A stretch of 64,000 nt of DNA from Ostrea edulis (Eukaryota): assembly GCF_947568905.1 (NCBI RefSeq), contig NC_079169.1, positions 5,890,001-5,954,000 on the forward strand, read 5' to 3'. The notes below the pieces were generated by a model that was not told the origin of the DNA, did not search any database, and saw only the letters and a program-made list of their open reading frames with translations. Below, piece by piece: positions 11,701 through 41,640 of the stretch (positions are counted from its first letter, which is position 1; each line of letters begins with the position of its first letter). The position numbers and the translations under genes were made by a program.

Positions 11701-12294
11701 TTAACACTAAATACATATAGATCTATTGTTACATTAACACTAAATACATATAAATCTACTGTTACATTAATACTAAATGCATATAGATCTATTGTTACAT
11801 TAAGATTTAATACATATAAATGTACTGTTACATTAACACTAAATACATATAGATCTATTGTTACATTAACACTAAATACATATTGATCTATTGTTACATT
11901 AACACTAAATATATATAGATCTATTGTTACATTAACACTAAATATATATAAATCTACTGTTACAATAACACTAAACACATATAAATCTATTGTTACATTA
12001 ACACTAAATAGATATAGATCTATTGTTACATTAAGATTAAATACATATAAATCTATTGTTACATTAACACTAAATACATATAAATCTACTGTTACATTAA
12101 CACTAAATAGATATAAATCTATTGTTACATTAACACTAAATACATATAAATCTACTGTTACATTAACACTAAATAGATATAAATCTATTGTTACATTAAC
12201 ACTAAATACATATAAATCTACTGTTACATTAACACTAAATACATATAAATCTACTGTTACATTAACACTAAATACATATAGATCTACTGTTACA
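8781..12294. repeat. 33-bp minisatellite (~106 copies)
   Basis: Unit TCTATTGTTACATTAACACTAAATACATATA(A/G)A; gives the 11-aa periodicity of the spurious ORFs 8676-11978 and 9424-11886. Confidence 0.97.
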
Positions 12295-13293: not shown

Positions 13294-14431
13294 TACAACA
13301 TAGTAGCATTGTAGCATGGTTCTATACTGCACAGCATAGTACCATTGTTTTTTACTGCACAGTATAGTACCATTGTTTTATACTGTACAACATAGTATCA
13401 TTGTTTTATACTGCACAACATAGTATCATTGTTTTATACTGCACAACATAGTATCATTGTTTTATACTGCACAACATAGTATCATTGTTTTATACTACAC
13501 AACATAGTACCATTGTTTTATACTGCACAACATAGTATCCTTGTTTTATACTGCACAACATAGTATCATTGTTCTATACTGCACAACATAGTACCATTGT
13601 TTTATACTGTACAACATAGTACCATTGTTTTATACTGTACAACATAGTACCATTGTTTTATACTGTCCAACATAGTACCATTGTTTTATACTTTACAACA
13701 TAGTATCATTGTTTTATACTGCACAACATAGTATCATTGTTTTATACTGTACAACACACATTGTTTTATACTGTACAACATTGTACCATTGTTTTATACT
13801 GTCCAACATAGTACCATTGTTTTATACTTTACAACATAGTTTCATTGTTTTATACTGCACAACATAGTATCATTGTTTTATACTGTACAACACACATTGT
13901 TTTATACTGTACAACATAGTGTCATTGTTTTATACTGTACAACATAGTACCATTGTTTTATACTGTACAACATAGTACCATTGTTTTATACTGTATAACA
14001 CACTTTCATTCTTTTATACTGTACAACACACTTTCATTGTTTTATACTGCAAAATATAGTATCGTTGTTTTATACTGTACAACATAGTACCATTGTTTTA
14101 TGCTGTATAACATAGTATCGTTGTTTTATACTGTACAACACACTTTGATTCTTTTATACTGTACAACACACTTTCATTGTTTTATACTGCAAAACATAGT
14201 ATCGTTGTTTTATACTGTACAACATAGTACCATTGTTTTATACTGTACAACATATTATCATTGTTTTATACTGTTCAACGAACTTTCATTGTTTTATACT
14301 TTACAACATAGTACCATTGTTTAGAATATACAACATAGTACCATTGTTTTTATACTGTACAACATAATATCATTGTTTTTATACTGCACAACATAATATC
14401 ATTGTTTTTATACTGAACAATATAATATCAT
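13294..14431. repeat. 28-bp minisatellite (~40 copies)
   Basis: Unit CAACATAGTA(C/T)CATTGTTTTATACTG(T/C)A, with some deleted variants. Confidence 0.95.
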
Positions 14432-14917
14432 TGAAAGGTGAAGATAACGAACAGTGATCAATCTCATAACTCCTATAAGCAATACAAAATAGATAGTTGG
14501 ACAAACACGGACCCCTGTATATACCAGAGGTGGGATCAGGTGCTTAGGAGGAGTAAGCATCCCCTGTCGACTGGTCACACCCGCCGTAAGCCCAATATCT
14601 TGATCAGGTACACGGAGTTATCCGTAGTCAAAATCAATGTGCCAAGAACGGTCTAACAATCGGTATGAAATACAGGAGCTAGATTTGACCCAATGATAGG
14701 CTGTATTGGCAAACTAGATTGTTATAATGGCCATAGAAGTTGTGAAATGCTGACTTGAAACTAGACTGTTGAAACCTCTGTACCATCAACTTGTTTGTCA
14801 ATAGCTTGCCTCGATTTAAAACCTGATCATACAAATAGCAAGCTTTTGCGTATCGAATCAGTTGAGAGATATAAACAACATATGCAGGTGATAATGGAAT
14901 ATTGCTATATAAATATG
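14432..14917 (-). mobile_element. Naiad-type Penelope-like element fragment (RT thumb end + 3' tail)
   Basis: Minus strand reads YLYSNIPLSPAYVVYISQLIRYAKAC..., followed by the shared tail ending CTTCACCTTTCA. Confidence 0.85.
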
Positions 14918-15547: not shown

Positions 15548-16635
15548 CAGAAACATATACCGTAATCTGTTGGAATTCCCATGGAAGCGAATTGTGCTCC
15601 ATTATTACATGTAGCTGACCCGTTTATATATTCTTGCGAGGCAAAATTTATTCAAAAGTTTCTATATAAAAAGAAAAAAATCTCTTGATGTGGCTTTCAG
15701 CTCGACATTTAGATACGTCGACGACGTTTCATTTATTAACAATAATCATTTTCATCTATATGTCCATTGGATATATTACAATAAACTTGAAATAAAGGAC
15801 ACCACAGAATCGTTCACGTCTGATGATGGTGAAGATTTAAAGTACATACTGCCCAGTAGTGGCCCTGCTACACTAGGCTTGTTGCGGCGACGCGACGATG
15901 GTGGTCAATACTCTGATCCCCAGGAAACGGGGATCTTGAAGATCCGGGGATGGTTAGGTCCTTCAGAAGTGGTGGATGGGTCCATCTCTTCTTCCTCGAG
16001 TCGATCGCTCACGGATCCCCACAGTATAGTTGGGAGAATGGATTGTTATTCTTCATCTGCTTCATACTTGGATATTTTATTGAACTTAAATGTTAACGGC
16101 AAACTACATGTAACAGCTCAACTTTACAATAAACTGCATGACATCAGCTTCTCCATCGTCAACTTCCTATATTTATACAGCAATAGTCCATTATCATCTG
16201 TATATAGTGTTTATGTTTCTGAACTGATTCGATACGCAAAGGTTGTTCTGCGTATGATCAATTTTTAAATTGAGAGAAAGGCTACTGACAAATAAATTGA
16301 TATTACAGGTGTTTCAGCAGTCTCGTTTTAAAGTCATCATCTCGCAAATTCTGTTGTCGTTATAGCGATTTAATTTACCAGTACACCCTATCATTTGTTC
16401 TAATGCTGTCTGACATGTTTCATACCAATTGTTAGGCCGTTCTTTGCACACTGATTTTACTGTGGATTACTTTGTTTACCTGATCATGATAACAAGCTCA
16501 CGGAGGATGCTTACTCCTCCTAGGCCACTGATCCCACCTCTGGTGTGTCCAAGGGTCCGCGTTTTCTTTATTCTTCATTTTATATTCTTTATAGGAGCTA
16601 TGAAATTGATTGCTGTTCGTTATCTTCACCTTTTC
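15548..16635 (+). mobile_element. Decayed Penelope-like RT fragment (probably Naiad/Chlamys-type, no C-terminal endonuclease) with 3' tail; interrupted by an insert at ~15823-16049
   Basis: SVGIPMEANCAPLL (RT motif B), TFRYVDD (motif C), LEIKDTTES..SASYLDILL..GKL..TAQLYNK..FSIVNF.YL.SN.PLS.VY.VYVSELIRYA (thumb). The frame ends soon after with no GIY-YIG. Stops and frameshifts present. Naiad assignment is from the thumb signature and domain order. Confidence 0.8.
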
Positions 16636-18945: not shown

Positions 18946-21900
18946 ACAGGTATACGTAGAACTCATAGGTGCATATAGAACTACAGGTGTGTGTATAGAA
19001 CTACAGGTGTATATATAAAACTACAGGTGTGTATATAGAACTACAGGTGTATATAGAACTACGGGTGTATATAGAAATACAGGTGTATATAGAACTACAG
19101 GTGTGTATATAGAACTACAGGTGTATATAGAAGTACAGGTGTGTACAGAACTACAGGTGTATGTATAGAATTACAGGTGTATATAGAACTAGATGTGTAT
19201 AGAACTACAGGTGTATATATAGAACTACAGGTGTGTATATATACAACTACAAGTGTGTATATATAAAACTACAGGTGTGTATATAGAACTACAAGTGTAT
19301 ATCGAACTACAGGTGTATATATAGAACTACGGGTGTATATAGAAATACAGGTGTATATAGAACTACAGGTGTATATATAGAACTACAGGTGTATTTATAG
19401 AACTATAAGTGTGTACACAGAACTACAGGTGTATATAGAAGTACAGGTGTATATAGAAGTACAGGTGTATATAGAAGTACAGGTGTATATAGAACTACAG
19501 GTGTATATAGAACTACAGGTGTATGTAAAACTACAAGTGTATATCGAACTACAGGTGTGTATATAGAAGTACAGGTGTATATATAGAAGTACAGGTGTAT
19601 ATAGAACTAAAGGTGTATATACATAACTAAACGTGTATTTATAGAACTACAAGTGTGTACACAGAACTACAGATCTATATATAACTACAGGTGTATATAG
19701 AAGTACAGGTGTATATAGAACTACAGGTGTATATATAGAACTACAGGTGTGTATATAGAACTACAGGTGTATATATAGAACTACAGGTGTATATATAGAA
19801 CTACAGGTGTATATATAACTACAGGTGTATATAGAAGTACATGTGTGTGTAGAACTACAGGTGAATATAGAATTACAGGTGTATGTATAGAACTACAGGT
19901 GTGTATATAGAACTACAGGTGTATATATAGAACTACAGGTGTACATATAGAACTACAGGTGTGTGTATAGAACTACAGGTGTACATATAGAACTACAGGT
20001 GTGTGTATAGAACTACAGGTGTATATAGAACTACAGGTGTGTATATAGAACTACAGGTGTGAATATAGAACTACAGGTGTGTGTATAGAACTACAAATGT
20101 GTATATAGAACTACAGGTGAATATAGAATTACAGGTGTATGTATAGAACTACAGGTGTGTGTATAGAACTACAGGTGTATATATAGAACTACAGGTGTAT
20201 ATAGAACTACAAGTGTGTATATAGAACTACAGGTGTGAATATAGAACTACAGGTGTGTGTATAGAACTACAAATGTGTATATAGAACTACAGGTGAATAT
20301 AGAATTACAGGTGTATGTATAGAATTACAGGTGTGTGTATAGAACTAGATGTGTGTATATAGAACTACAGGTGTGAATATAGAACTACAGGTGTGTATAT
20401 AGAACTACAGGTGTATATAGGTGTGTGTATAGAACTCCAGTTTTGTATATAGAACTACATGTGTATATAGAAATACAGGTGTGTGTATATAGAACTACAT
20501 GTGTGTGTATAGAACTACAGGTGTATATATAGAACTACCGATGTGTATGTAGAACTACAGGTGTGCATGTTGAACTACAGGTGTGTATATAGAACTACAG
20601 GTGTATATATAGAACTACAGGTGTACATATAGAACTACAGGTGTGTATATAGAACTACAGATGTATATATAGAACTACAGGTGTACATATAGAACTACAG
20701 AGGTATATAGAACTACAGGTGTGTATATAGAACTACAGGTGTATATATAGAACTACAGGTGTACATATAGAACTACAGGTGTGTATATAGAACTACAGGT
20801 GTATATATAGAACTACAGGTGTGTATATAGAACTACAGGTGTGTATATAGAACTACAGGTGTATGTATAGAACTACAGGTGTACATATAGAACAACAGGT
20901 GTGTGTATAGAACTACAGGTGTGCATGTAGAACTACAGATGTGTATAGAACTACAGGTGTATATATAGAACTACAGGTGTGTATATATAAAACTAAAGGT
21001 GTGTATATATAGAACTACAGAGGTATATAGAACTACAGGTGTATATAGAATTACAGTTGTGCATATATAAACTACATGTGTATATAGAACTACGAGTGTA
21101 TATAGAAATACAGGTGTATATAGAACTACAGGTGTATATATAAGTACAGGTGAATATAAAACTACAGGTGAATATAGAATGACAGGTTTATGTAAAACTA
21201 CAGGTGTATATAGAACTAAAGGTGTATATACATAACTACACGTGTATTTATAGAACTACAAGTGTGTACACAGAACTACAGATCTATATATAACTACAGG
21301 TGTATATAGAACTACAGGTGTATATAGAACTACAGGTGTATGTAAAACTACAAGTGTATATAGAACTACATGTGTGTTATATAGAAGTACAAGTGTATAT
21401 CGAACTACAGGTGTATATCGAACTACAGGTGTGTATATAGAAGTACAGATGTATATATAGAAGTACAGGTGTATATAGAACTAAAGGTGTATATACATAA
21501 CTACACGTGTATTTATAGAACTACAAGTGTGTACACAGAACTACAGATCTATATATAACTACAGGTGTATATAGAAGTACAGGTGTATATAGAACTACAG
21601 GTGTATATAGAACTACAGGTGTGTATATAGAACTACAGGTGGGTATATAGAAGTACAGGTGTATATAGAACTACAGGTGTATATATAAGTACAGGTGTAT
21701 ATAGAAGTACATGTGTGTGTAGAACTACAGGTGAATATAGAATTACAGGTGTATGTATAGAACTACAGGTGTGTATATAGAACTACAGGTGTATATATAG
21801 AACTACAGGTGTACATATAGAACTACAGGTGTGTGTATAGAACTACAGGTGTACATATAGAACTACAGGTGTGTGTATAGAACTACAGGTGTATATAGAA

Positions 21901-24900
21901 CTACAGGTGTGTATATAGAACTACAGGTGTGAATATAGAACTACAGGTGTGTGTATAGAACTACAAATGTGTATATAGAACTACAGGTGAATATAGAATT
22001 ACAGGTGTATGTATAGAACTACAGGTGTGTGTATAGAACTACAGGTGTATATAGAACTACAGGTGTATATAGAACTACAAGTGTGTATATAGAACTACAG
22101 GTGTGAATATAGAACTACAGGTGTGTGTATAGAACTACAAATGTGTATATAGAACTACAGGTGAATATAGAATTACAGGTGTATGTATAGAATTACAGGT
22201 GTGTGTATAGAACTAGATGTGTGTATATAGAACTACAGGTGTGAATATAGAACTACAGGTGTGTATATAGAACTACAGGTGTATATAGGTGTGTGTATAG
22301 AACTCCAGTTTTGTATATAGAACTACATGTGTATATAGAAATACATGTGTGTGTATAGAACTACAGGTGTGTATAGAACTACAGGTGTATATATAGAACT
22401 ACCGATGTGTATGTAGAACTACAGGTGTACATATAGAAATACAGGTGTGTATATAGAACTACAGGTGTATATATAGAACTACAGGTGTACATATAGAACT
22501 ACAGGTGTACATATAGAACTACAGGTGTGTATATAGAACTACAGGTGTATATATAGAACTACAGGTGTACATATAGAACTACAGAGGTATATAGAACTAC
22601 AGGTGTATGTATAGAACTACAGGTGTACATATAGAACAACAGGTGTGTGTATAGAACTACAGGTGTGCATGTAGAACTACAGATGTGTATAGAACTACAG
22701 GTGTATATATAGAACTACAGGTGTGTATATATAAAACTAAAGGTGTGTATATATAGAACTACAGAGGTATATAGAACTACAGGTGTATATAGAATTACAG
22801 TTGTGCATATATAAACTACATGTGTATATAGAACTACGAGTGTATATAGAAATACAGGTGTATATAGAACTACAGGTGTATATATAAGTACAGGTGAATA
22901 TAAAACTACAGGTGAATATAGAATGACAGGTTTATGTAAAACTACAGGTGTATATAGAACTAAAGGTGTATATATATAACTACACGTGTATTTATAGAAC
23001 TATAAGTGTGTACACAGAACTACAGGTGTATGTATAACTACAGGTGTATATAGAAGTACAGGTGTATATAGAACTACAGGTGTATATAGAACTACAGGTG
23101 TGTATATAGAACTACATGTGTATATAGAACTACAGGTGTGTATATAGAACTACAGGTGTGTATATAGAACTACAGGTGGGTATATAGAACTACAGGTGGG
23201 TATATAGAAGTACAGGTGTATATAGAACTAAAGGTGTATATACATAACTACACGTGTATTTATAGAACTACAAGTGTGTACACAGAACTACAGATCTATA
23301 TATAACTACAGGTGTATATAGAACTACAGGTGTGTATATCGAACTACAGGTGTGTATATAGAACTACAGGTGTCTATAGAACTACAGGTGTGTATATAGA
23401 ACTACAGGTGTGTATATAGAACTACAGGTGTGTATATAGAACTACAGGTGGGTATATAGAAGTACAGGTGTATATAGAACTACAGGTGTATATATAAGTA
23501 CAGGTGTATATAGAAGTACATGTGTGTGTAGAACTACAGGTGAATATAGAATTACAGGTGTATGTATAGAACTACAGGTGTGTATATAGAACTACAGGTG
23601 TGTATATAGAACTACAGGTGTGAATATAGAACTACAGGTGTGTGTATAGAACTACAGGTGTGTATATAGAACTACAGGTGTGAATATAGAACTACAGGTG
23701 TGTATATAGAACTACAAATGTGTATATAGAACTACAGGTGAATATAGAATTACAGGTGTATGTATAGAATTACAGGTGTGTGTATAGAACTAGATGTGTG
23801 TATATAGAACTACAGGTGTGTATGTAGAACTACAGGTTTCCATAGAACTACAGGTGTATATAGGTGTGTGTATAGAACTCCAGTTTTGTATATAGAACTA
23901 CATGTGTATATAGAAATACAGGTGTGTGTATATAGAACTACATGTGTGTGTATAGAACTACAGGTGTACATATAGAACTACAGGTGTACATATAGAACTA
24001 CAGGTGTGTATATAGAACTACAGGTGTATATATAGAACTACAGGTGTACATATAGAACTACAGAGGTATATAGAACTACAGGTGTGTATATAGAACTACA
24101 GGTGTACATATAGAACTACAGGTGTATATATAGAACAACAGGTGTGTGTATAGAACTACAGGTGTGCATGTAGAACTACAGATGTGTATAGAACTACAGG
24201 TGTATATATAGAACTACAGGTGTATATATAGAACTTCAGGTGTACATATAGAACTACAGAGGTATATAGAACTACAGGTGTGTATATAGAACTACAGGTG
24301 TATATATAGAACTACAGGTGTACATATAGAACAACAGGTGTGTGTATAGAACTACAGGTGTGCATGTAGAACTACAGATGTGTATAGAACTACAGGTGTG
24401 TATATAGAACTACAGGTGTATATATAGAACTACAGGTGTACATATAGAACAACAGGTGTGTGTATAGAACTACAGGTGTGTGTATAGAACTACAGGTGTG
24501 CATGTAGAACTACAGGTGTATATATAGAACTTCAGGTGTACATATAGAACTACAGAGGTATATAGAACTACAGGTGTGTATATAGAACTACAGGTGTATA
24601 TAGAACTACAGGTGTGTGTATAGAACTACAGGTGTATATAGAACTGCAGGTGTACATATAGAACTACAGGTGTATAAAGAACTACAGGTGTATATAGAAG
24701 TACAGGTGTGTATATAGAACTACAGGTGTATATAGAACTACAGGTGTGTATATAGAACTACAGGTGTGTATATAGAACTACAAGTGTATATATAGAACTA
24801 CAGAGGTATATAGAACAACAGGTGTATATATAGAACTACAGGTGTGTATATATAGAACTACAGGTGTATATAGAACTACAGGTGTGTGTATAGAACTACA

Positions 24901-27696
24901 GGTGTGCATGTAGAACTACAGATGTGTATAGAACTACAGGTGTATATATAGAACTACAGGTGTGTATATATAGAACTACAGGTGTGTATATATAGAACTA
25001 CAGGTGTGTATATATAGAACTACAGAGGTATATAGAACTACAGGTGTATATAAAACTAAAGGTGTATATATAGAACTACAGGTGTATATAGAACTACAGG
25101 TGTATATATAAGTACAGGTGAATATAAAACTACAGGTGAATATAGAATGACAGGTTTATGTAAAACTACAGGTGTATATAGAACTAAAGGTGTATATATA
25201 TAACTACACGTGTATTTATAGAACTATAAGTGTGTACACAGAACTACAGATCTATATATAACTACAGGTGTATATAGAACTACAGGTGTATATAGAACTA
25301 CAGAGGTATATAGAACTACAGGTGTGTATATAGAACTACAGGTGTATATATAGAACTACAGGTGTATATAGAACTACAGGTGTATATAGAACTACAGGTG
25401 TGAATATAGAACTACAGATGTGTATAGAACTACAGGTGTATATATAGAACTACAGGTGTATATATAGAACTTCAGGTGTACATATAGAACTACAGAGGTA
25501 TATAGAACTACAGGTGTGTATATAGAACTACAGGTGTATATAGAACTACAGGTGTGTGTATAGAACTACAGGTGTATATAGAACTGCAGGTGTACATATA
25601 GAACTACAGGTGTATAAAGAACTACAGGTGTATATAGAAGTACAGGTGTGTATATAGAACTACAGGTGTATATAGAACTACAGGTGTGTATATAGAACTA
25701 CAGGTGTGTGTATAGAACTACAGGTGTGCATGTAGAACTACAGATGTGTATATAGAACTACAGGTGTATATAGAACTACAGGTGTATATAGAACTACAGA
25801 GGTATATAGAACTACAGGTGTGTATATAGAACTACAGGTGTATATATAGAACTACAGGTGTATATAGAACTACAGGTGTATATAGAACTACAGGTGTGAA
25901 TATAGAACTACAGATGTGTATAGAACTACAGGTGTATATATAGAACTACAGGTGTATATATAGAACTTCAGGTGTACATATAGAACTACAGAGGTATATA
26001 GAACTACAGGTGTGTATATAGAACTACAGGTGTATATAGAACTACAGGTGTGTGTATAGAACTACAGGTGTATATAGAACTGCAGGTATACATATAGAAC
26101 TACAGGTGTATAAAGAACTACAGGTGTATATAGAAGTACAGGTGTGTATATAGAACTACAGGTGTATATAGAACTACAGGTGTGTATATAGAACTACAGG
26201 TGTGTGTATAGAACTACAGGTGTGCATGTAGAACTACAGATGTGTATAGAACTACAGGTGTATATATAGAACTACAGGTGTGTATATATAGAACTACAGG
26301 TGTATATAGAACTACAGGTGTGTGTATAGAACTACAGGTGTGCATGTAGAACTACAGATGTGTATAGAACTACAGGTGTATATATAGAACTACAGGTGTG
26401 TATATATAGAACTACAGGTGTGTATATATAGAACTACAGGTGTGTATATATAGAACTACAGAGGTATATAGAACTACAGGTGTATATAAAACTAAAGGTG
26501 TATATATAGAACTACAGGTGTATATAGAACTACAGGTGTATATATAAGTACAGGTGAATATAAAACTACAGGTGAATATAGAATGACAGGTTTATGTAAA
26601 ACTACAGGTGTATATAGAACTAAAGGTGTATATATATAACTACACGTGTATTTATAGAACTATAAGTGTGTACACAGAACTACAGATCTATATATAACTA
26701 CAGGTGTATATAGAACTACAGGTGTATATAGAACTACAGGTGTATATAGAACTACAGGTGTGAATATAGAACTACAGGTGTATATAGAACTACAGGTGTA
26801 TATAGAACTACAGGTGTATATAGAAGTACAGGTGTATATAGAACTACAGGTGTATATAGAAGTACAGGTGTATATAGAACTACAGGTGTATATAGAAGTA
26901 CAGGTGTATATAGAACTACAGGTGTATATAGAACTACAGGTGTATATAGAACTACAGGTGTATATATAGAACTACAGGTGTACATATAGAACAACAGGTG
27001 TGTATATAGAACTACAGGTGTATGTATAGAACTACAGGTGTGTATATAGAACTACAGGTGAATATAGAATTACAGGTGTATGTATAGAACTACAGGTGTG
27101 TATATAGAACTACAGGTGTGAATATAGAACTACAGGTGTGTATATAGAACTACAGGTGTATATATAGAACTACAGAGGTATATAGAAGTACAGGTGTATA
27201 TAGAACTACAGGTGTATATAGAACTACAGGTGTATGTAAAACTACAAGTGTATATAGAACTACAGGTGTGTGTATAGAACTAGATGTGTGTGTAGAACTA
27301 CAGGTTTCCATAGAACTACAGGTTTCCATAAAACTACAGGTGTATATAGGTGTGTGTATAGAACTCCAGTTTTGTATATAGAACTGCATGTGTATATAGA
27401 AATACAGGTGTGTGTATATAGAACTACATGTGTGTGTATAGAACTACAGGTGTGTATATAGAACTACAGGTGTATATATAGAACTACAGGTGTACATATA
27501 GAACAACAGGTGTGTGTATAGAACTACAGGTGTGCATGTAGAACTACAGGTGTAAATAGAACTACAGGTGTGTATATAGAACTACAGGTGTGTGCATAGA
27601 ACTACAGGTGTGTATGTAGAACTACAGGTGTGTACAGAATTACGTGTTTCCATAGAACTACAGGTGTATATAACTACAGGTGTATGTAGAACTACA
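18946..27696. repeat. ~8.7-kb satellite of 18/20-bp units with higher-order repeat structure
   Basis: Core GTGTATATAGAACTACAG (18 bp) and GTGTGTATATAGAACTACAG (20 bp); rare variant blocks recur at 1.4-2.2 kb intervals. Confidence 0.97.
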
Positions 27697-29045: not shown

Positions 29046-32000
29046 ATGATGTTCAGGGTGAAACTGATGACTTTCTGCTTTGTGATTCTGTCTGTGGATT
29101 ATTACGGGCATGGCTACAGTACTTACCCCCGGCGCTATAACAGGGACAGCGTGTGGGGTACCTGTCCCCAGCACTGCAGGTGTATGACCCTCAATAGCAG
29201 GGGAACCCGAGGACTTCTGGACACATGGGGAGAGGAGCAAGTGTCCGAAAAGACTTTGAAATATTTTTCCGGAGGCATCAACGATGAAGCTGCGAGAAGC
29301 GGTCGAAGCATGGTTTGCCAGGGTCTAAGAAAACTCCCAGACCCCATTCCCTCAGGTAAGACATCGACTGTAGGTACTTGTATATTTCACCCGATGTTGT
29401 ATTTCACCTGATACTCTATTTTAATATAGAATAGATTAATATCAGACAGAAAGTTAATCTGATACGAAAAGTGTGTGATACTGAGAAAATATATTGCATA
29501 TCATACTCTTCTGATTAATTACACAGGAATTATGGCAACCATTGGCACAAACTGCATCCCACAAAGCTTAAGAATATCTTGTCATAGAAATGTGTCTCTA
29601 CAATGTATACATACATGTACATCCACAGGAAAGGTTTCGCAATATTTTTGTAACGTTAGTCATAATCACCTTGTGTAGCCATTAACAGGAAATAGATAAT
29701 TAGAACAAAACATCTTTTTTTTTGTCCGCTTGGTACATAGAATTGTGAAACTCACATTTAAGATGATTCGTTAATCGATGTATATAATTAAAATTTACAT
29801 TCCGTGTAGATTTCATTGTTTTTTTTTAACTCAGTAAAAGATTCTCTCATGCCTTGTCGTGGTTCACTCCGTATTTTTATACATACATATAAAATTTGTT
29901 TAGTTAGGATTCATACTACACCTGATTAATTTTGGTAAACTAAACAGCACACTGACAATGACACTGTTGTCTGATTTATATGGCGACACTGGCGGACTGT
30001 GTTCGGTGTCGCACGTGACACGGATCAGACTCCCCAGCCCGTGGCTATATAGCTTACAGTGTAATAAATAAACACACACACACCATAACTGCGACCTATA
30101 CATTTACTATTATTCAATTAAAAGATCGTATCTATCCAGTCGTTAGAGGGACACTATTAGAGAAGATGGGAGAACTTTATACAATAACGACTGCTGATGG
30201 CAAGAGAGTATGTAAACAACGAGACAAATTATCATTGTATTCATTCACTCTAGAGTTAGAAATAAAACCACTGCTGCCTTCTTACACCCTCTATTGATAC
30301 TTGAACAATACGGTGAGGCCACTTTTTATCTATATGTAACAAATTTTTTAAAGAGTTCATAAAGTTACTTGTGTTATTCTAGACAGATAACTTGTCTTCG
30401 ATCTTCAAACAATATCTCTCTTCGATCTTCAGATACTTTAATTTTCCCCTTGAAGACCATTAAACATACGAGTTTTCGATCAGATCAGCTATTGCATGCT
30501 GTTAGTGGCACGTCAAAAGAGCAGGGTGCATGCTGGGATACCAACACTAAAACGATCATTGTACAGAAAGGGATAAAAAGAGATATCTGGAAAAAAATCT
30601 CTTAAAATGTTACTGACCAAATCCTTCATAGAAAAAATATACATGTTCCAAAAATTTTAATGAGATCCATCATTTGTTGTTTCTGAGCGGAAAACTGATG
30701 ACGGCTGTTTGTATGGTGATTGCATACCACTTATAAGGAAAGCGCTTTAGGGGGAAAAGCTTTTTACAATGCCACAATGCTGTAGGAGAGATGGTTATAT
30801 AGTATATAGGGTCATATTCAGCGTTTAGTTGGGGTTCAAGGAGGGATCTGTCAACTTAATTGGCGTGCGTATTCTTCCGGTGTGTCAAAAGACTCGTCGT
30901 CTCCTTCAACAAACTCTATTTTATTGAATTGTTTTCACTTCCATGTCAGTCAAGATGTTATCTCTGTCGTCTGAAGACATTTTCTCTTTGTGTAAGAAAA
31001 CAATAATGGTCACTTGAAACGGTACTCTGAAATCATTAAATCAAACTGATAAATTATAATCCACCAAATTTACCCCTTTCAAATAAATCTACCAGATTAC
31101 AATATGGATATGGGTATAGAATAGCTAGGTCTTATTGTTCTCAATACCTTAGAAAGCACCTTTGACTCTGTGAACTTTCACAAATGTAAGATAGAGAAAA
31201 AATATATACTACCTTCATGGTTTTGATACCTTGTTAAGAAAAGAAAACAGCGAAGTTTTATAATACCCTGCTATTGATGGTCAAGACATCTGTTTGCTTT
31301 CTCTATCGACAATTTTCTCCAAGATTAAATTATATTCAACATTTAAGTCTACAAGGGTATAAGTAATCGATCTCTTGACACAAGATCTTTCTTCAAACAA
31401 TAATAATCAGGATTGTTACTGGGAATTTTTCAAAGCAAGTCCTGGACTCGTGGTTTATGGGCAGTTTAAGTCCCATGATATAGTATATAATACGTGTAAC
31501 TGTATAAAAATATAATTCCCCTTCCAATGTGTATCCAACCAATACACTTCGTAACCATGCGAGTCCTAACTCTTGGGATGTTTGCAAAAATAAATATGTA
31601 TCAATGTAGAAAATTTGAAAGAAAATTCCTTATGAATTTGTTAATTATTCAAAATAAGCACATTTGATTAAAGAAATGGATAAAAGAGAGAAAAACTAGT
31701 GTTATTATTTCTGGTATTTGCGATTTCATACTCATTGAACATGTTGAAAGCATTAACTACAAAACAGAAGTTTGAATGGAACTAGAACCTGGTTTGAGTG
31801 AATGTTCAAATGAAAACATCGATCTTTCAAAGTTAGATTTTCACTAGAGTCAAAAGACTTCTTGATCTGTAAAATTGGTCAAAAGATAATATTCCGTGGG
31901 ACATTATTTTATTGGAACGGCACGGTAATGAAGTGGATTGGAAGTCTGTCTGAGCCGTGTGTGACGCTCTCTGGAGTTTATTAACGGTATTGGACTTGAC

Positions 32001-35000
32001 GCTTATCCCCATTACAAGAAAGAAAGACATTGATGGCAGTTTGATGCTTTATGTATGTGTAGACACACTGAAAATAAAATCTTAACTGTGGTATCCCTGT
32101 TTAGTCGTGGACGGTAAATTATCTGTAGTTACAATCATTAATACATCCAGGATACATGTAGATACTCCATACCTCATGATGTCGATATATAAATTATCTC
32201 GTATCTTGTTTCATAGCCAAGAACTGTCCGCAGAAAGTGTGCAAAAGTCTTCCACCGAAGCCTGTCAAATTTTCCTTGTGTGCTATTCACGTTTAGGCCA
32301 TTTTAAATTAATTTAGCTTCTCTTTAGACTTGGATTTATTTTATGAATGGAATAGCGGATAAAGTCGGAAGGGCTTTAAAAGTAAATCTTGATAACATTT
32401 GCGCTTATCATCACACTATTGACTTATGAATGACTTTGTCACATGCTTATTAATTTTGGCGTGAACATTTTGATGTATGTATGAAAAGCAGCGACCGCAG
32501 GAGGGCAGCACATAATACGCGCAGCGCCCCCTGTGTGGAACATCGGCCAGTGAATTAGCTTTTAAAATAGTACCAAGTTTTTCCCCGTGTGCACATCGTC
32601 TATTTGTCATTCAACAATTTAAAGTTCCGTTGTAATATAAAATATAGATAAAATTAGCCGATATACCTTTTAAACGAATACATGGCAACGCGCATATATT
32701 AATATGAAACGACACCGGACTGACTTACAATGTAGCCTTGCGCTGTGCGATTTCTTCCGGCAGATTGTATACAGATAATGTCAAAAGTGACCTAGGATTA
32801 TCCAAACCCGACCCCGGATAACCGCCCCAGCTGTCATATCGTAAGCTGCATGTCAATGGTTGGCAAACTACAGGCTTTTCAGAATATACACGCACTGTAA
32901 ATTTCTTATCTTTTTTTTATAACATTAAATATAATGTATTTGGTCCAGCTGAGCGACCTATTTTTAAAACCAGATCTTGTCGGCACTGTTCTGTAAATCA
33001 TTTCGTTTTACTTCACTAAAATCAATATTAAATCGATTTGCAAACTACCTTTTAAAAAACGTTCACACTTTCTCTCTTATCTGTTATTCGTCGAAAAAAA
33101 ATTCCTTCAACCATATTGCAAGAATATACGCAACATAGAATTAGAATAAAACGAATATAAATCTTTCCAAAAATCAGCATGATTTTTTTTCTGGTATGAT
33201 ATTGATGGAAAAAGTATTTCATCAAGATGATATAAGAGAGAGAAAAAAAATGAATGTACTTAGTTTCCCTGTATCTATTGGGGTCTTTGCACACCATGGT
33301 CGGTCTTGAGTTGCCTATCTCGTGGAATTACCAGTGGCGTATGATATATATGTTGTCAGGCTCTAGTTAAAACATACAGAGGAAATGAATGAGAGCAAGT
33401 GTATCAATGAAGGGCACACCTGCGATAGGAGAAATGACTTGTTCCCTATCACCTGCCAGCATTACACACATATATATGTATTTATAACATTCAAACATCT
33501 CGCTGAGTTACGGTATCGATAGGTATCTACAAAGTCGTTAACATAAAAGAGGTTTCGTGTCGAATCGACTTGCTCGAACTGTATACCTACTGAAACTAGA
33601 TAGGGATGTATCATTATCGATGAAAAATGTCAACTCCGCGTTTCACGCACCTGTTTACTGTCGATGGTTGCAATGCAGGGGGTCGCGTGAGCTGGGCTAG
33701 TTCAAGTACATCATAGTATTTCTATCCTCAAAATACCACAATAAAAACGTCGATAAAATACATGTATACTTCATCTACACAAATCACCGCTATAAAAGTA
33801 ATTAATCTTAATTCACGGTTTTTTATAAGCACTAATGATTTTTGAATTCAGAAATGAGAAACCCGCCATTAGTTAAGCCTAGCAGACAAGTTAAGAGACA
33901 CATTGTCAAACGTTATAATTATTTTAAAAGCTGCCATGAGATCTCTCAACAGATAAAATAACGTGAAAATCAGAGAATTTCTCCCATAAAACTACTACAA
34001 ATACTCGATCACACCTGAGTGATCGGAACAACACGGAATACGTTGATTATTTCACCTGATTAGGCACGGAATGACTAAGGTGACAGAACGAAATCCGAGT
34101 GTCCAAGCTATTCTTACAGACAGAAATTACACTAGGAGAGAAAGAAAACGTTGTCTGGTGTTTAAAATAAAGTAATCATGTGTAAACGTTTGACGTCTTG
34201 ACAACAAAACTGACAAAGAACATACAAAAGGAACGAGAAAAGGAATGCCTGACGGTTTCTCTATACTGTCATCTGCACTGTTGGGAAAACTTAAAACGGT
34301 CGCCATTTCTTCAGTCGAATCCTTGCGATTCCAAACTAGACAAAGAAGTGCAAGCGGGAATAAAATTAACAGGATCACAATTTATAAAATTACATCTAAA
34401 TGATAATCCTTTTTCTAAGATTTCATCAGAATACGAAACAATTCAGTTTTCAGAATTGTTTTTTCTTGTGTTAACGTTGAATGTTATAGATGTGTTTGCT
34501 GATAGTTTGCAGCTTTAAATATAATTTTATATTTTTAAAACTTAGCTTTAAGTACAAAAAAATTATATCAAAAATCGTCTAAAGCTCGATAGCTTGAAAA
34601 TGGGACCGCAATGTGATGTTTTATCTAACGAACACGTGGTTTTATGTGCTGTGTGTTACTGTAGATAGAAACAGATAAAGCACGGAAATCATTTCATCTC
34701 ATTCTAATAACAGCAGATTATGTTAATTAAAAATTCTCAAAGAAAATATCAAAAGATTTTCTAGTTCACTTAAATAACCTTCAATAAAATAAGCCAAATC
34801 CGTTGATTTCAAATACGATTTAAAACGATATCTTTTTTAATGACTAGAAATAATCCAAAATATAATTTTGAAATAGAAAAAAAATAGGGATCAATTTTTG
34901 ATATTTTCTGGCGAATCTCCCTTTTCGAAGAACAGAGTTTACTAGGAGATTGCAGATAGGAAATGAATTTAATGGTGAGCATGTTTTAATGTGAATCAGT

Positions 35001-38000
35001 GCAATTTACACCAGGGTCGTTGATGGTGGAGGTCTGACCCCACCCACCGCAGTGTTCAACGTTTCTTAGATACATGTCCGCCTCTTGTAAAGGTTTTCAT
35101 ACATAGTGATCTACCTCGAAATAATCAACACCAGATGCGATCTAAAATGGAGAAGATTCATTTTACGCCATTGCTTCGTTAGAATGTAGACCATCTGACA
35201 TATTAACGGCACAGTAGCGTAACTCAGCGAAATCGCAATAAACGCACTATTTAGTGTATTCACAAATTAGCGTGACCCTGCAATGACAGATAAATAGAGA
35301 ATTCCATGATTTAGATGAAATAATAAAGTAGTACTCTTCCGTCTTTGTCAAATTAAATTAAAAAACCCGCGAAATAAAGTACATATGTACCCATGTATGC
35401 AGGCAGAACCACGTGATCAAAACAATTATGACAAGATGGTTCAGATTTGTCGATTGAACAAGATACACTCTTACATACTAAGGAATACATTAACGACACC
35501 TGTGACCTTAAACTAATGGTCACGTACATTGTTAATCAATGGAAAAATCTCATAAATTGATAAGAAAATTGAAATGTACAGTGCGTTACAGTTCGTTGTA
35601 AAAGCGAGCAGGCAAGGCACATCAATTAACCTTGTAAACGAGTTAATGAATACAAACTGCAACTGTAAAATGCGATTCCATTATCTCATTAGCTGTGTGT
35701 TGGTAAGTTAGGGAGTTCACCTGCTCCGGAGCATACCGCCTTCTCGTAAACAGCGCCAGGGAGAATACAGGAAGAGGTTTTTACGAAGTTCAGAGTCTTA
35801 AAAACAAACACCAGATCAACAATGATAAAGGATCTGCATTTGGTGCATCGAACATAAAAAAAACCTCAAGACATAATAACAAAACATTAGGTCAATAAAA
35901 ACAGAAGATGACTGGTAACAAAAATACCTGCTGCCAAACTATAATAACACGTAATGAAATGGAATGAAAATATACGATGTACAGCATGGATTGTGACAGA
36001 ATACATTGAAAGCATTTCATCAAGTGTACATTGCTTAGTCCGTCAAAACCATTAACTGAAAATCACGAGAACAGCCATCTTTGACGGTACTGTCTTCAAA
36101 GAGCTCTCTTCATCACAAGAATTGCATTGGACATGTAATGGTTAAAACATATTCATTAACCTGTAGCAGATGTTTTAGGCAAAGATGTAGTCAAGGTTTT
36201 TAGAAAAACGTCTGCCAAGTCGGAATATGAAATACAATTTTTTCCACAATTTTTCATACGGAAATGAGGACAGTAACATTCTTTTACAGCATTGTTTTGT
36301 TCATCTATATTTAAAACACATACAACCGGTATCAGAGACTGCTTGCTATGCAGAATCCAGGATGACAGTATATAACTTGTTTTTTGTTTTATGGGGTTTT
36401 TGTTTTGGCTGATTTATTCCAAACAGCTGTGATAATTTACTACGGTTTTTTAATTTAATATTCATTCAATTGCATAATTCTCTTTAAACTGTAATCGTTT
36501 TCCCACAAACAATTATTTTCGCTATATTTTCAGATATTTCCAAATTGACAATATTCGGAGACAGTAGCGGGAGTGGACCAGGCGGAAGGACGGATATTAC
36601 AGTAGATACCCGGATCAAAACTTTAGAAAGACGTTCATTTCGCGGCAACATGCGTCTGAAGGAAATCTCCATGTCAGGCAATAACTTGGGTATTCTTTAT
36701 CCGTATGTCTTCTACCACCTCCGAGATCTAAAGATCCTTAATCTTCCAAACAACAATATACGCCATATGTCAGCGGCTGCGTTTCATGGGCTATTTAGCT
36801 TACATGAGTTGAATCTTTCTGACAACATGATACGATTCTTCCCGACGCCCCTGTTTAATTACCTCCGTGAATTGCGAAGCGTTAATTTGAATGGCAATAA
36901 AATCAGAGCGATACAGAGAAACATGTTTCGAGCGCTTGGAAAGCTGGAGAAACTCGATCTTTCACGAAATAATATCACCGATATGTATGACGACACGTTC
37001 TATCACAACACGGAACTGACCGAGTTGTACCTCAGTGGAAACAGACTTTGGAAGCTACGACCGGAATGGTTCCAAAAATTAAACAAATTGAAGAGTTTAT
37101 CCCTGAGGGGCAATATGATTAAAACCGTAGAGCCAAACTCGTTTAGTAATCTTTACAATCTGAAAGACTTGCTGTTATCTGCTAACATGCTTCAGACTCT
37201 GCAGGATGGAGCATTTAAAAACCTTAAACAACTGGACATTTTGGATGTGTCCACTAACGATCTGACAACCGTACCCACGTCCTGTTTTGAGGATCTTCAA
37301 TCTTTGAAGGAGCTATATCTTGGAAAAAACAAGCTGTCAATCATTCAGAATGGAACTTTTAACTTTGGCGGCAATTTGAACTTGCTCGATCTTTCAGGAA
37401 ACTTGATTGAAACAGTAGAGAGGGAAGCATTGTACCCTATCAACCAAGTCCACACCATAGATTTCTCAAGAAACAAGATTCGAATTATCACCAAGGACTT
37501 CATTAAGCGACTCAATAACCTACAAGATCTCAATTTAGCCGATAATTTTATTCAGGATATTGAGCAGGGTGCATTCAGTGGTGCTGTGAAACTAACTCAC
37601 TTAAACCTGAAGAACAACAAAATGAAAAGAATTGGTCAAAAAACATTTGAGTCATTGACCATATTAAAGTCTCTAGACTTAGGACAGAATACCATCAACA
37701 ATATTCATCCAAGTGGCTTAACAACGCTCAGAAACTTACGTTCGCTAAGTATTAGGGATAACAAAGTTTCGAAATTAGAGGCAAACTTGTTTTTGTCCTT
37801 GTATAAACTGCTAGAGTTGGACGTATCAAACAACAGACTTAAGGCACTGTCCAATCAGAGCTTTGTTGGTTTGCTGAACTTGGAGGATCTTGATTTGGAG
37901 GCCAACAATATCCACGACATCGCCCCTGAAACCTTCAGATCCTTGCCTAGGGTTGTAACTCTCGATCTTAAGGGAAATAAACTTATCAATTTCAATTTCT

Positions 38001-39598
38001 CTGTTATTTCCGAGTTACCCTACCTCTCGATGTTGGACCTAAGTGAGAATAACTTGTTTAATGTAGAGATCGGCGAAAATGTCAAGTTAAGACTCAGTGA
38101 ATTAAGCCTTTCAAAAAATAACATAAAAGAACTTTCCGAGAAAGTGAAGAGAATCATGTCCTCCTCCTCTGTGCTTTTGCTGGATGGCAACCCTTGGAAT
38201 TGTAATTGTAAGGTTAAATGGCTGAAAGACCCTATGTTGTCACGGCAGATCCGACTCCAATCAACCAATGATGTAATCTGCAAAGCACCGACAAAATTAC
38301 ACGGTAAAAAGGTACGTGATACGTCACACAAATTTCTAGTCTACCAAATGACATTCCAATGGTAGTTTGTTAACGCGAGAGGCATGTGTAAATCATACGC
38401 TACTGGTAACAGAATAATTGATGAATGTATGGGTCCATACCAAAATACTCCATATGCACAAGTCTTTAATCAGTTTCCTTGTAGCAATTTTACCAAACAA
38501 AATACACTAATAAGTGGGGTTTTTTTTCATTTAGTTGTTTGACCTATCGGACAAAGAATTAGCCTGTCAAACTACGAAGGACAGAAATTCAACAGCTATC
38601 CAGATGTGCGAAGGATCCAACTTTGTGAAAAAGCGTTGGTATTCTCCGAGGTAAGCTCGTACGCATGTGTGAACCCTCAAAACTTTGTAAATGAAAAACG
38701 AAAGAAAACATACATATATCATTATAATGCAAGTTGAACATTATACATAACGTTTTTAAAGACTCAAATACTGAAAAGGGTCATATCCCTCACGGTTACT
38801 TCCTGTGTTGTCAGTTATTCATGTCAGTCATCTAAATGCTCTCTCTTTTTACAATTCTTCAGATCCGTTCGAAAGGCCCTGCTGTCACGACACGCAACCA
38901 TTGTGGATGAAAACGAGGCTCTGGTGGTTAATGGAATTATGGTTTCTGAGGATTGGGTTCTTACATTAGGAAGTAGTACTAATGCAATCTTGCAGTCAAC
39001 GAATCCGAATAGTTTCCGAGTCAAAGTTGGGAGGACCAAAGGTTATCGATCTATAGTTCGTGTATTCAGACATCCGCTTATTCGGTATGGAACACAATAT
39101 AACGTGGCTCTCATAAGACTAAAATACAAGAAGAAGAACCCGGATCAATCATGCATCATCACAGAAAAACAGTACAAAATATTGACAAGTATATTCAAAC
39201 ACATTTCCATAACTACAAGAGTTAAAGGGAAAACAAAGTTCACAAAATTGAAGCCTCGACGAGGGCGCATCTCCAAATCTTGTTCTAAGAAGAATTTAAT
39301 ATGTGCTACAATCAAGAACCCAAAGAAAGGAATGATGTTGATGGATGGTTCCCCGATGTACTTGGGACACAATGGGGACTATAGACTAGCAGGCATTGGG
39401 ATGGACCTCCCTGCAAAGAAGGACCACAAGTACAATTTTATTCCTTTGTGGTCTGTCTCAGAGTGGATGCAAACTGTAATAGACGAATACAATACCAAGT
39501 GTCATCTGAACACTAAAGGAGTAGACGTGTGCGCAGACCTTGCTCTGCCTACGTTCAAAGACATGGCAGACAAACTTCGCAGGCCTGAGCACCACTAA
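29046..39598 (+). CDS. Secreted LRR protein (LRRNT, ~22 LRRs, LRRCT) fused to a C-terminal catalytically dead trypsin-like serine-protease-homology domain; 4 exons, 979 aa
   Basis: Exons 29046-29355, 36534-38311, 38535-38650, 38863-39598 with GT-AG borders and matching phases 1/0/2 (2940 nt). Signal peptide MMFRVKLMTFCFVILSVDYYGHG. LRRNT CPQHCRC...MVCQGLRKLPDPIP. 21 clean LxxLxLxxNxL repeats (mostly 24 aa) plus one interrupted repeat. LRRCT NPWNCNC...VICKAPTKLHGKK|LFDLSDKELAC is completed only by the exon 2/3 junction. Trypsin-fold motifs: MVSEDWVLTLGS, FRVKVG, VFRHP..YNVALIRL, SCIIT, LICA, MDGSPM..YRLAGI, VSEWMQTVI. Confidence 0.88.
30225..30330 (+). mobile_element. Possible old, highly diverged remnant of the same PLE RT family (intron 1 of the LRR gene)
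   Basis: GAGTTAGAAATAAAA-CCACTGCTGCCTTCTTA resembles the ELEIKDTT..SASFLD region of the 15.8 and 55.2 kb copies. Confidence 0.3.
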
Positions 39599-41640
39599 TT
39601 GTGGATTGTGAATATTCTTTCAGTGCTGGAATATAATGCACTATAATGTGTGACAATTTTGTATAATGATGGGTATAATGACGTCCGAACATCACCCCAC
39701 AGAGAACGATGTAATGGATGAAACACAAAAATGTTTCAAAGTAATATGCAATATTACTCATCTCATTCCATTACCAGATTGAAATCGCCGTCAATTTTAC
39801 AGACAGCCATTGCGTAACTCAATATTTAATGGAATCCAATGTAATTATTTGAACCATTGGTGAGGAGAACATGTAATTTATCATTATTAATTGCAATCAG
39901 TTTATTTTTTTGCTCCAATTGTTGTAAATATGAATGCGTGCTGGAGTAGTTTGTCGGGATCGTGCAGTTCGATTTCCCGTCACAGGTCTCTGTATATACT
40001 TATCTATTGTTTGATGTTTCACTTTATATACTTCATACAACGGGGGAGTGCTAGTGTAAAGTTCTTAACAATGCTTCCTCTGGTCGCCTCGCGCCATCAA
40101 ACCTTCTTCCACGGAGCGGATGTAATCACACACGACTTTATGAATAATTAATTATTGCCAGCTTCTTTTATGTGGTTGTACAACACACGACCTTGTGAAT
40201 AATCATTGCCTGCTTCTATGTGTTTGTACAAAATCTAAAGAGAACTGTATAAACCATATTTTGTCGTTTTTGTTAGAGAGTTTTTGTTATGTGACTATTT
40301 TCGTTATATTTTGATTTTTTAATGGATTAAAAGTTAGGAAAACAGCGTTCTGGTGTCCAAGAGACTTTATCAATTACATAATGAATGGCATGATAATGGA
40401 TAAGAATAATAAATATAGGATAGAAATGAAATTAGACAATTTTCGAAAATACATTGTATTCTAATTCTGATTTCTCTACAATCTAAATTACTGAATATGA
40501 ATCGGTTAACTCGAAATCCTAAAACTACGTAACCTACACTTGCGTTCTGAATTTTTTTTCTGATCATAATCTTCGATTATTGCATGTATGGTAGAAAGCT
40601 GATCATAATAAATAAAATTGCAAGCAGATATCTCTCACCATGAGTAACCATCAAACATCTTCCTCGCATTTCTTTTTAAACAGACATACACTTACAAGAA
40701 TATTGAAGACTTTAAATTCCTCAGTTATAAGACACACGGACAAGACAGAACGATTTGCCCTCCTTTGATAAACATATTCTAAGAATACCAGAATTAGTAT
40801 CATAATCTGTTTGAAATCCGACCAAAAAGAGATGCCTGTATCTCATTGTTTCTCTTTCGTTTTCTTTATACAACCCCTTGGGAATATTTAATCCACAGAA
40901 GAGATCTTATTTTCATGGACTGCCACGATTTGACGTTATTATTAACGTTCGAGTATCGTTTCAGAATGTGGTCTGTGCATTCAAACATTACATATACACA
41001 AAGTTTATTTTTCGTGAAAGCAATAAAGGTGCCAAGAAATCGATGATATTCTACAGTTACATGTTAAGAGAAATGAGATACTCACTTTGGGAATGTTCGA
41101 AAAGATATACCTGTTATTCAGAGAGGACTAGCCTGTGAGTGATACCCATGTACACGGTATATATCTACACATTTTTATTTGATTAAACATCTTTTAAATT
41201 AATTATACAGATCTGCCCGATTTGGGGAATAGGTAGTAAAATGGTTTGCCATGTAGGACGTTATGAACACGCGTTTCTATTGATAGCAATGTTGATATTG
41301 AACAACCGAGGGCTACATATTATGTGCATTGTATTAGGTTATAAGGATCCTCAACAATGGATTATAGATTAGATATCTCTCAGCCATTCTATATTTCTTT
41401 AAACATGATAAAGTGCATAGCTAACAGGTAACTTAAAACAACAGCAACAAAAATAATTTTTTTTTGTAGAACAGTTCATTCATTTTGGTATCAATGAAAA
41501 GAAAATTAATACAGAATACACAGACATGTGCACTTACATGTATATAATGTGCAAATACAAGTATACACTATGTCGTAGCGTGAAAGTGAAGTTGCTATTT
41601 AATGGGACATACGAAAGGAAAGAAGTAGGCGGGGGAGGGG

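Follow-up and report, generated by a model that had tools for sequence, protein, structure and literature searches.

The window studied here, a 64,000-nucleotide stretch of the Ostrea edulis genome (contig NC_079169.1, positions 5,890,001 to 5,954,000 of the forward strand), contains a four-exon gene that is real and expressed and that encodes a secreted protein of 979 amino acids (aa). The protein consists of an N-terminal leucine-rich repeat (LRR) arch, a linker, a chymotrypsin-fold (S1) domain that has lost its catalytic triad, and a family-specific tail. Its family, for which we have coined the name LRR-SPH (SPH, serine-protease homologue), is conserved across bivalves and has a relative in a chiton, as sequence comparison demonstrates. 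We suggest, with a probability of roughly 0.75 and by analogy with other pseudoproteases, that the protein is a non-catalytic extracellular bridging protein with a conserved physiological role. It represents a new architecture within the known class of mosaic serine-protease homologues, and adds an LRR arch to their known partner domains (CCP, kringle, EGF and clip) in a strongly constrained family, which is already present in the databases under misleading names.

The four exons (Table 1) join into 2940 nucleotides (nt) of a single frame, 979 codons and a stop, with GT..AG borders at all three introns and no stretch of N anywhere in the window. Contigs from four public sequencing runs were aligned to window positions 34600-40500 (5,901 letters). 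Spliced contigs in three public runs (X7, X1 and X2, from two studies and two close species) use exactly the junctions that an earlier note on this DNA had proposed, and in each of them 38312-38534 and 38651-38862 are precisely removed. The X7 contig (5,296 nt) shows 0 differences from the window over about 3.5 kb, and the X1 and X2 contigs represent a relative about 2% diverged from the window with the same splicing as X7. On the aligned stretch, the spliced contigs start at the exon 2 acceptor and are preceded by a 30-nt loose end, GGTCTAAGAAAACTCCCAGACCCCATTCCC. This 30-mer occurs only once in the window, at 29322-29351, right before TCAG, where exon 1 ends, and GTAAGA. Because the loose end is identical to the end of exon 1, junction 29355/36534 is confirmed, on the basis of the loose-end sequence rather than of a direct alignment joint. 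All three proposed junctions, 29355/36534, 38311/38535 and 38650/38863, occur together in one molecule, and the four-exon structure with its single 979-aa frame stands. Since all three introns are cleanly removed, we read the contigs as transcripts. We have also observed a low-depth (2.6) X2 contig inside intron 1, at 36069-36176, which is joined to 36288 across a non-canonical AG..AC border; noise, a repeat and an unrelated transcript are all possible explanations for it.

It could be argued that the gene model is an artefact, such that the LRR exons and the trypsin-like exon are two neighboring genes, or that the C-terminal exon is a decaying pseudogene fragment. Prokaryote-style gene callers do divide the locus into open reading frames (ORFs) of 564 and 330 aa, and the S1 domain of the window by itself falls under the Pfam threshold. 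However, single contigs span exons 1-2-3-4 with the introns exactly removed in three runs and two species, which rules out two separate genes; full-length orthologues of 976-1001 aa are found in many bivalves; and the S1 domain is under strong purifying selection. Spliced contigs, orthologues and selection together exclude such an artefact. Between the window and a Saccostrea transcript (L009), the proportions of non-synonymous (pN) and synonymous (pS) differences are 0.08 and 0.66-0.67 in both the LRR part and the S1 domain (0.084 versus 0.657 for S1 residues 736-940), and synonymous divergence is near saturation, with a nominal ratio of non-synonymous to synonymous rates (dN/dS) of about 0.05. 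Among the 40 listed differences to the relative about 2% diverged from the window, 26 are synonymous and 14 are non-synonymous. The C-terminal domain is a maintained serine-protease homologue (pseudoprotease), not a decaying pseudogene.

Exon 1 encodes a hydrophobic signal peptide and an LRRNT whose CxC and VxC halves are parted by an insert of about 40 residues (window 29181-29330, residues ~46-90, between CRC and VCQG). Exon 2 matches Pfam LRR_8 (E = 1.5×10−99) and contains 21 strict LxxLxLxxNxL motifs with an exact 24-residue period at residues 145-624, with 1-2 irregular repeats N-terminal of them, and the LRRCT (NPWNCNC...C...C) is encoded across exons 2 and 3. The earlier note had described a signal peptide, an LRRNT, about 22 LRRs and an LRRCT in one secreted chain with neither a transmembrane segment nor a TIR domain, and the analysis agrees on each of these points. 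There is no second hydrophobic segment, the 19-residue hydropathy maximum (1.4) being at the signal peptide; the Pfam scan found no TIR domain, the protein stops at 39598, and the contigs continue into the 3′ untranslated region (UTR). The protein is secreted and has no membrane anchor. A Toll or Toll-like receptor is ruled out by the absence of a transmembrane helix and of a TIR domain. The label “Toll-like” given in the same note is not upheld either, because artichoke, chaoptin, IGFALS, Toll-like receptors (TLRs), LGR4 and chondroadherin-like proteins, all outside its own family, resemble the LRR part to the same degree (25-31% identity); judged by this similarity, the LRR part is a generic extracellular LRR arch and not specifically Toll-like. 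Three oyster genera share 81-88% identity in the N-terminal region and have almost the same LRRNT insert; this insert and the STYPRRY and YGDSS motifs can also be recognized in pearl oysters, mussels, ark shells, scallops and Mya. The LRRNT insert has no known counterpart.

The C-terminal domain is very divergent in sequence. The exon 4 product alone (244 aa) scores 14.4 bits against Pfam Trypsin (cut-off 20.6; E = 0.034), over the first barrel only, and a single-sequence phmmer search against PDB returns trypsin at E = 0.94. A word-index search with the same 244 aa retrieved, in its length window, only ORF-style fragments of close orthologues. An exhaustive phmmer search of 1.84 billion representative proteins gave 22 matches at E ≤ 10−3, the high-scoring ones of which belong to its own family, and none of which looks like a canonical trypsin; at least one match (P0141) looks spurious, consisting of five short stretches in a repetitive 568-aa protein. 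We then used a family profile, A1, which is an alignment of 26 family members. Against PDB, A1 matches chymotrypsinogen (E = 8×10−11) at residues 29-243, the full domain length. In total, 536 distinct PDB sequences match at E ≤ 1, all of the 60 listed being S1-type chains, and haptoglobin is among the matches (3×10−9). Pfam Trypsin is matched individually by 18 of the 26 members at E ≤ 1 (best E = 3.3×10−12). One distant member, P0136 (977 aa), scores 42 bits, above the curated cut-off, over profile positions 12-219 of 220 and also matches LRR_8; a region search with P0136 gave no match besides P0136 itself.

Structure prediction leads to the same fold. The AlphaFold2 model built with A1 has a mean predicted local distance difference test (pLDDT) score of 87.6 and a predicted template modeling (pTM) score of 0.88. 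Foldseek returns at least 500 matches for it, and the 50 listed are all S1 proteases (E of about 10−11, probability 1.00, TM 0.60-0.64). With VIA-align, about 200 residues are aligned at Z = 19-20 and a root-mean-square deviation of about 3 Å, and the pseudoprotease protein Z is the tied top match (Z = 19.8), level with active proteases. ESM features point to Trypsin clusters at 0.96, and the unnamed ESM Atlas clusters gave weak, uninformative matches only, for the linker and SPH domain of P0005. The trypsin fold over both barrels, which the earlier note had proposed for this domain, is established by the family profile, the predicted model and its Foldseek and VIA-align matches. This is a clean case of a domain overlooked by Pfam in the oyster orthologues and revealed without ambiguity by a family profile or structure prediction.

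Residues of the S1 domain were mapped by HMMER profile alignment to chymotrypsinogen (Table 1). As had been claimed, all three catalytic positions are altered (H57S, D102N and S195D) and the Cys42-58 bond is gone (C42V and C58S); a second classical disulfide, Cys191-220, is also lost. The IVGG activation terminus is missing as well, and the segment after R735 (SVRK) lacks 5 residues relative to chymotrypsin. With the triad, Gly193, the Asp194 partner and two disulfides lost, the domain, as judged by its residues, cannot have serine-protease activity or undergo canonical activation. An active S1 protease was considered and is ruled out, since the triad and the oxyanion hole are absent. More distant members of the family keep the Cys42/Cys58 pair (CNGVLI..W..T.ASC) and some keep Asp102, and His57 is kept in no family member of A1.

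Nearly all members have an Arg or Lys right before the S1 domain; in the window protein this basic residue is R735, in a codon split by intron 3. A linker Cys (C721 here) is found exactly 14 residues before the basic residue, and at offset -24 from the RH(A/V)T strand, in 15 of the 15 full-length Pteriomorphia members listed. Pinctada P0128 was left out of this scoring because the motif search took a wrong site. A shift of 1-3 residues in this offset is seen in Mya and in three more distantly related members, among them the chiton protein P0156. The spacing from C721 to R735 equals that from Cys1 to Arg15 of chymotrypsinogen, in which Cys1 is disulfide-bonded to Cys122. Exon 3 would thus code for a vestigial activation peptide, with C832 as its tether. 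The invariant Cys832 probably pairs with the linker Cys721, as in mosaic S1 proteins, and clipping after R735 may yield a two-chain form held together by this disulfide. The retained Cys-14-Arg linker would then record the conversion of an active mosaic protease ancestor into a binding protein.

The tail of about 39 residues is characterized by C948, C958, an L-x-L-P motif and an E-x-H carboxy-terminus, which are common to the full-length Pteriomorphia members in A1. In the AlphaFold model it is predicted to form a hairpin and a helix, with pLDDT values of 87-95 in 10-residue blocks over domain residues 201-240 and of 52 for the last four residues. No structural match to the tail was found, and few PDB alignments extend past model residue 211.

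Members of LRR-SPH are defined by the STYPRRY motif, the split LRRNT, about 22 LRRs, the LRRCT, the linker Cys at -24, the dead S1 domain and the Cys-hairpin tail ending in E-x-H, and the window protein has every one of these features in common with the Pteriomorphia members. Full-length relatives (951-1008 aa) can be found in Crassostrea/Magallana gigas, a second Crassostrea/Magallana species, Saccostrea, Pinctada, Mytilus and Tegillarca, and also in the scallops Argopecten, Pecten and Ylistrum and the heterodont Mya arenaria (1001 aa). Full-length members come from at least 8 bivalve genera. In the chiton Liolophura, LRRs and the same S1-type domain occur together in a protein of 1619 aa. 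Crassostrea and Saccostrea are at about the same distance from the window protein.

Only two copies are present in the genome of 895 Mb, on the same strand and 41.8 kb apart. The tandem paralogue (L012, at G000:C6:5970715-5971458) lies about 16.7 kb past the window end and has an LRR exon directly upstream of its dead S1 exon. This S1 exon shares 42% identity, and in it His57, Asp102 and Ser195 are replaced by Thr, Asn and Asp, respectively. The tandem paralogue resembles a 1000-aa oyster paralogue (P0007). In the maximum-likelihood tree, the window protein groups with the C. gigas and Saccostrea proteins of 978/979 aa (support 100/99) and with the Pinctada protein of 951 aa, and the 1000-aa oyster paralogue groups with the Pinctada protein of 964 aa. 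Because each paralogue groups with its own Pinctada protein, the duplication is, according to this tree, older than the split between oysters and pearl oysters. Independent duplications took place in mussels and in ark shells.

RefSeq names the family IGFALS or artichoke-like, and the precomputed Pfam hits of the RefSeq orthologues are LRR families only, with no S1 domain. The earlier note had suggested that annotation could split the gene or call it simply an LRR/Slit-like protein. The RefSeq orthologues are whole, at 978-979 aa, and carry the IGFALS name. The curated annotations of the relatives are whole, but their C-terminal domain is unrecognized. Since the similarity is generic to extracellular LRR proteins, the RefSeq name establishes neither orthology nor function. 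IGFALS, Drosophila convoluted (dALS), artichoke and chaoptin likewise have a signal peptide, an LRRNT, about 20 LRRs of 24 residues and an LRRCT, and ALS and artichoke also lack a membrane anchor. However, these proteins are without the S1-fold domain, the propeptide-like linker, the split LRRNT and the tail of the oyster protein.

We therefore consider next the possibility that the protein is the true functional counterpart of vertebrate IGFALS, that is, a circulating LRR carrier that stabilizes complexes of insulin-like peptides and IGFBP-related proteins. Vertebrate ALS is a secreted LRR-only glycoprotein of about 600 aa that binds binary complexes of IGF and IGFBP3/5 and has no S1 domain, and Drosophila ALS (convoluted) acts in a complex of Dilp2 and Imp-L2. 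The direct C. gigas orthologue of the window protein, XP_011415594 (gene 105319673, 978 aa), to which it is 86% identical over the LRR part and 74% over the C-terminal domain, is the “ALS5594” of Li et al. 2021 (PMC8156652), and the ALS5594 forward primer of that study translates, by hand, to PLMLME, inside the S1-like domain. ALS7489 (1000 aa) is most likely the tandem paralogue, by its length and by the tree of the same study. Li et al. placed seven “ALS” genes of unrelated lengths in the insulin/IGF pathway by name and expression and give no binding data. In their pooled cDNA from eight tissues, ALS5594 goes down on fasting and recovers on re-feeding; it is also expressed at a higher level in wild than in fast-growing oysters and is unresponsive to low temperature (PMC8156652). 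LRRs are not mentioned in that paper, where the word “domain” appears once, in a reference title, and the C-terminal domain went unnoticed.

The fall of both ALS5594 and ALS7489 on fasting and their rise on re-feeding together with ILP, ILPR and IGFBPRP (PMC8156652) would fit an IGFALS role, as would the RefSeq name and an ALS-like set of about 20 LRRs with capping motifs. Yet the name derives from a generic LRR similarity of 25-31%, the same as to unrelated LRR proteins, and binding data are absent from the published study. Moreover, the protein is not an LRR-only chain of about 600 aa; the LRR-SPH family has a split LRRNT of a special kind, and its propeptide-like linker, SPH domain and tail add a conserved portion of about 260 aa. 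We regard an IGFALS function as very unlikely. The oyster “IGFALS” genes ALS5594 and ALS7489, which growth and aquaculture studies treat as part of the insulin/IGF pathway, contain a conserved dead-protease domain foreign to vertebrate ALS. The misleading annotation has already entered the literature, together with the assumed insulin/IGF role.

Open-access literature mentions the orthologue only in PMC8156652 and its preprint, and the expression data found there are nutritional only. Searches of open-access full texts for fusions of LRRs with serine-protease homologues or trypsin-like domains in molluscs or bivalves returned nothing relevant, which is not proof of novelty, and nothing specific was found in the open-access literature on immune, hemocyte or shell-matrix data for these “ALS” proteins.

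What might a conserved, catalytically dead S1 domain do at the end of an LRR arch? Several pseudoproteases are known to have partners: haptoglobin binds hemoglobin, HGF binds Met, protein Z binds ZPI, azurocidin binds polyanions, and arthropod SPHs act as cofactors. Haptoglobin (CCP and dead S1), HGF/MSP (kringles and dead S1) and protein Z (Gla-EGF and dead S1) are likewise secreted mosaics in which a C-terminal chymotrypsin fold has turned into a binding module, and they share with the oyster protein the Cys122-type Cys and a basic residue at the former activation site after a linker Cys. The relationship is at the level of the S1 superfamily only (13-19% identity). The oyster protein differs in that its N-terminal partner is an arch of about 22 LRRs and not CCP, kringle or EGF, in that its S1 domain is also without Gly193, Asp194, Cys42-58 and Cys191-220, in its extra Cys-hairpin tail, and in that two-chain cleavage is only predicted. 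The oyster S1 domain contains 38 Lys and Arg versus 12 Asp and Glu, with a net charge of about +26 and an isoelectric point (pI) of 10.3. Azurocidin (CAP37, or heparin-binding protein), a dead and strongly cationic S1 fold in which His57 is replaced by Ser as in the oyster protein, offers charge-based polyanion binding as a possible model for this domain. Azurocidin is a single-domain granule protein of vertebrate neutrophils with no LRR part and no specific sequence relationship.

By these analogies, the dead S1 domain would serve as a binding module, as in haptoglobin, the HGF/MSP beta chain, protein Z, azurocidin and arthropod SPHs. Its net charge of about +26 makes an acidic or polyanionic partner most likely; examples would be sulfated glycans, an acidic protein, or a partner resembling a serpin or protease. 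A second ligand would be bound by the LRR arch via an independent surface, and the protein would thus bridge, present or sequester extracellular partners. The physiological role could lie in the extracellular matrix, in nutrition and growth, or in humoral carriage. We favor a conserved physiological role over a diversifying immune receptor because of the low copy number, the shared paralogue groups, the slow evolution under purifying selection and the feeding-linked expression of the orthologue.

The earlier note had read the protein as a soluble pattern-recognition sensor, in which the LRR part would bind microbial ligands and the dead domain would recruit, scaffold or decoy a cascade of the prophenoloxidase (proPO) or Toll type; the domain could also be a cationic antimicrobial or opsonic module like azurocidin. 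Some arthropod SPHs bind microbes or act as proPO cofactors. The analogy invoked is that arthropod SPHs (clip-domain SPHs, masquerade and mosquito CLIPA/SPCLIP1) and the LRR proteins LRIM1/APL1C are extracellular, non-enzymatic adaptors. In keeping with it, an LRR arch and an SPH domain are combined in one secreted chain, the SPH domain is as strongly cationic as noted above, like azurocidin and arthropod SPHs, and TLR ectodomains are among the LRR matches. In arthropods, however, LRR and SPH are separate polypeptides and the SPHs have clip domains, whereas the oyster protein is one chain without clip: Pfam scans of the exon translations and of four other family members gave no CLIP match. The two genome copies, the paralogue groups common to oysters and pearl oysters, and the non-synonymous divergence of about 8% against a synonymous one of about 66% are unlike the expanded, fast-evolving immune receptor families of bivalves. 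In addition, the LRR part resembles TLRs no more closely than it does artichoke, chaoptin and ALS, and neither immune evidence nor challenge-induced expression was found in the open-access literature searched. The Toll/immune-cascade reading is therefore not favored, and we consider it rather unlikely.

A further idea is that a mollusc-specific single chain does what separate LRR proteins and SPHs do in arthropods. The LRR arch would capture a microbial or endogenous ligand, and the cationic dead module, freed or re-oriented by cleavage at R735 and held by Cys721-Cys832, would nucleate or trap a serine-protease/serpin cascade. We hold this to be distinctly unlikely; if true, the “ALS” insulin-pathway markers in oyster growth studies would be mis-assigned.

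Several observations weigh against our preferred reading of a conserved bridging protein. The runs containing the spliced form are not on record as RNA, transcription being deduced from the exact removal of three introns, and the contigs are compatible with additional (minor) isoforms, for example an LRR-only form. In the AlphaFold model of linker plus SPH domain, the first 30 residues of the linker have block-mean pLDDT values of 39, 58 and 73, and both the Cys721-Cys832 bond and the cleavage at R735 are predictions. The data on nutritional regulation come from eight pooled tissues of another species, C. gigas. Finally, the binding and bridging mechanism is drawn from analogy with other pseudoproteases, and a small probability stays with an immune role.

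Table 1. Features of the window and residue equivalents in the S1 domain (window coordinates; residue equivalents by HMMER alignment to chymotrypsinogen)
Feature	Position	Strand	Description
Minisatellite array	983-3335		31 bp x76
Minisatellite array	8790-12294		33 bp x106, GC ~0.2
Minisatellite array	13307-14433		28 bp x40
Minisatellite array	18969-27696		20 bp x455, GC skew ~+0.35; ends 1.35 kb before start codon
Exon 1 (coding part)	29046-29355	+	Start codon, signal peptide (~residues 1-23), STYPRRY motif, split LRRNT (CPQHCRC ... VCQGLRKLPDPIP); frame, GT donor, 30-nt loose end
Intron 1	29356-36533	+	7.2 kb, GT..AG; spliced contigs without depth over 34600-36529
Exon 2	36534-38311	+	~22-23 LRRs (24-residue period) and first part of LRRCT (NPWNCNC...); spliced contigs cover it end to end
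Exon 3	38535-38650	+	Last LRRCT Cys (residue 707), propeptide-like linker with Cys721 (nt 38607-38609); junctions 38311/38535 and 38650/38863 in X1, X2 and X7
Exon 4, first part	38863-39478	+	Catalytically dead S1 (chymotrypsin-fold) domain, residues 736-940
Exon 4, end of coding sequence	39479-39598	+	Family-specific tail, residues 941-979; stop codon 39596-39598
3′ UTR (at least this far)	39599-40500	+	5296-nt X7 contig reaches 40500 at record position 4194 and continues ~1.1 kb further
His57 equivalent	38972-38974	+	S772
Asp102 equivalent	39101-39103	+	N815
Ser195 equivalent	39344-39346	+	D896
Cys122 equivalent	39152-39154	+	C832; invariant in whole family
Cys42 equivalent			Val757
Cys58 equivalent			Ser773
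Cys191 equivalent			Met
Gly193 equivalent			Leu894
Asp194 equivalent			Met895
Cys168/Cys182 equivalents			C875/C882; disulfide pair kept

Upstream of the gene, the window contains four long minisatellite arrays (Table 1). The 1100-aa and 820-aa “ORFs” at 8676-11978 were rejected as repeat artefacts inside the 33-bp array. Between the satellite arrays, two open frames of 264 aa (6024-6818, + strand) and 192 aa (15690-16268, + strand) were observed.

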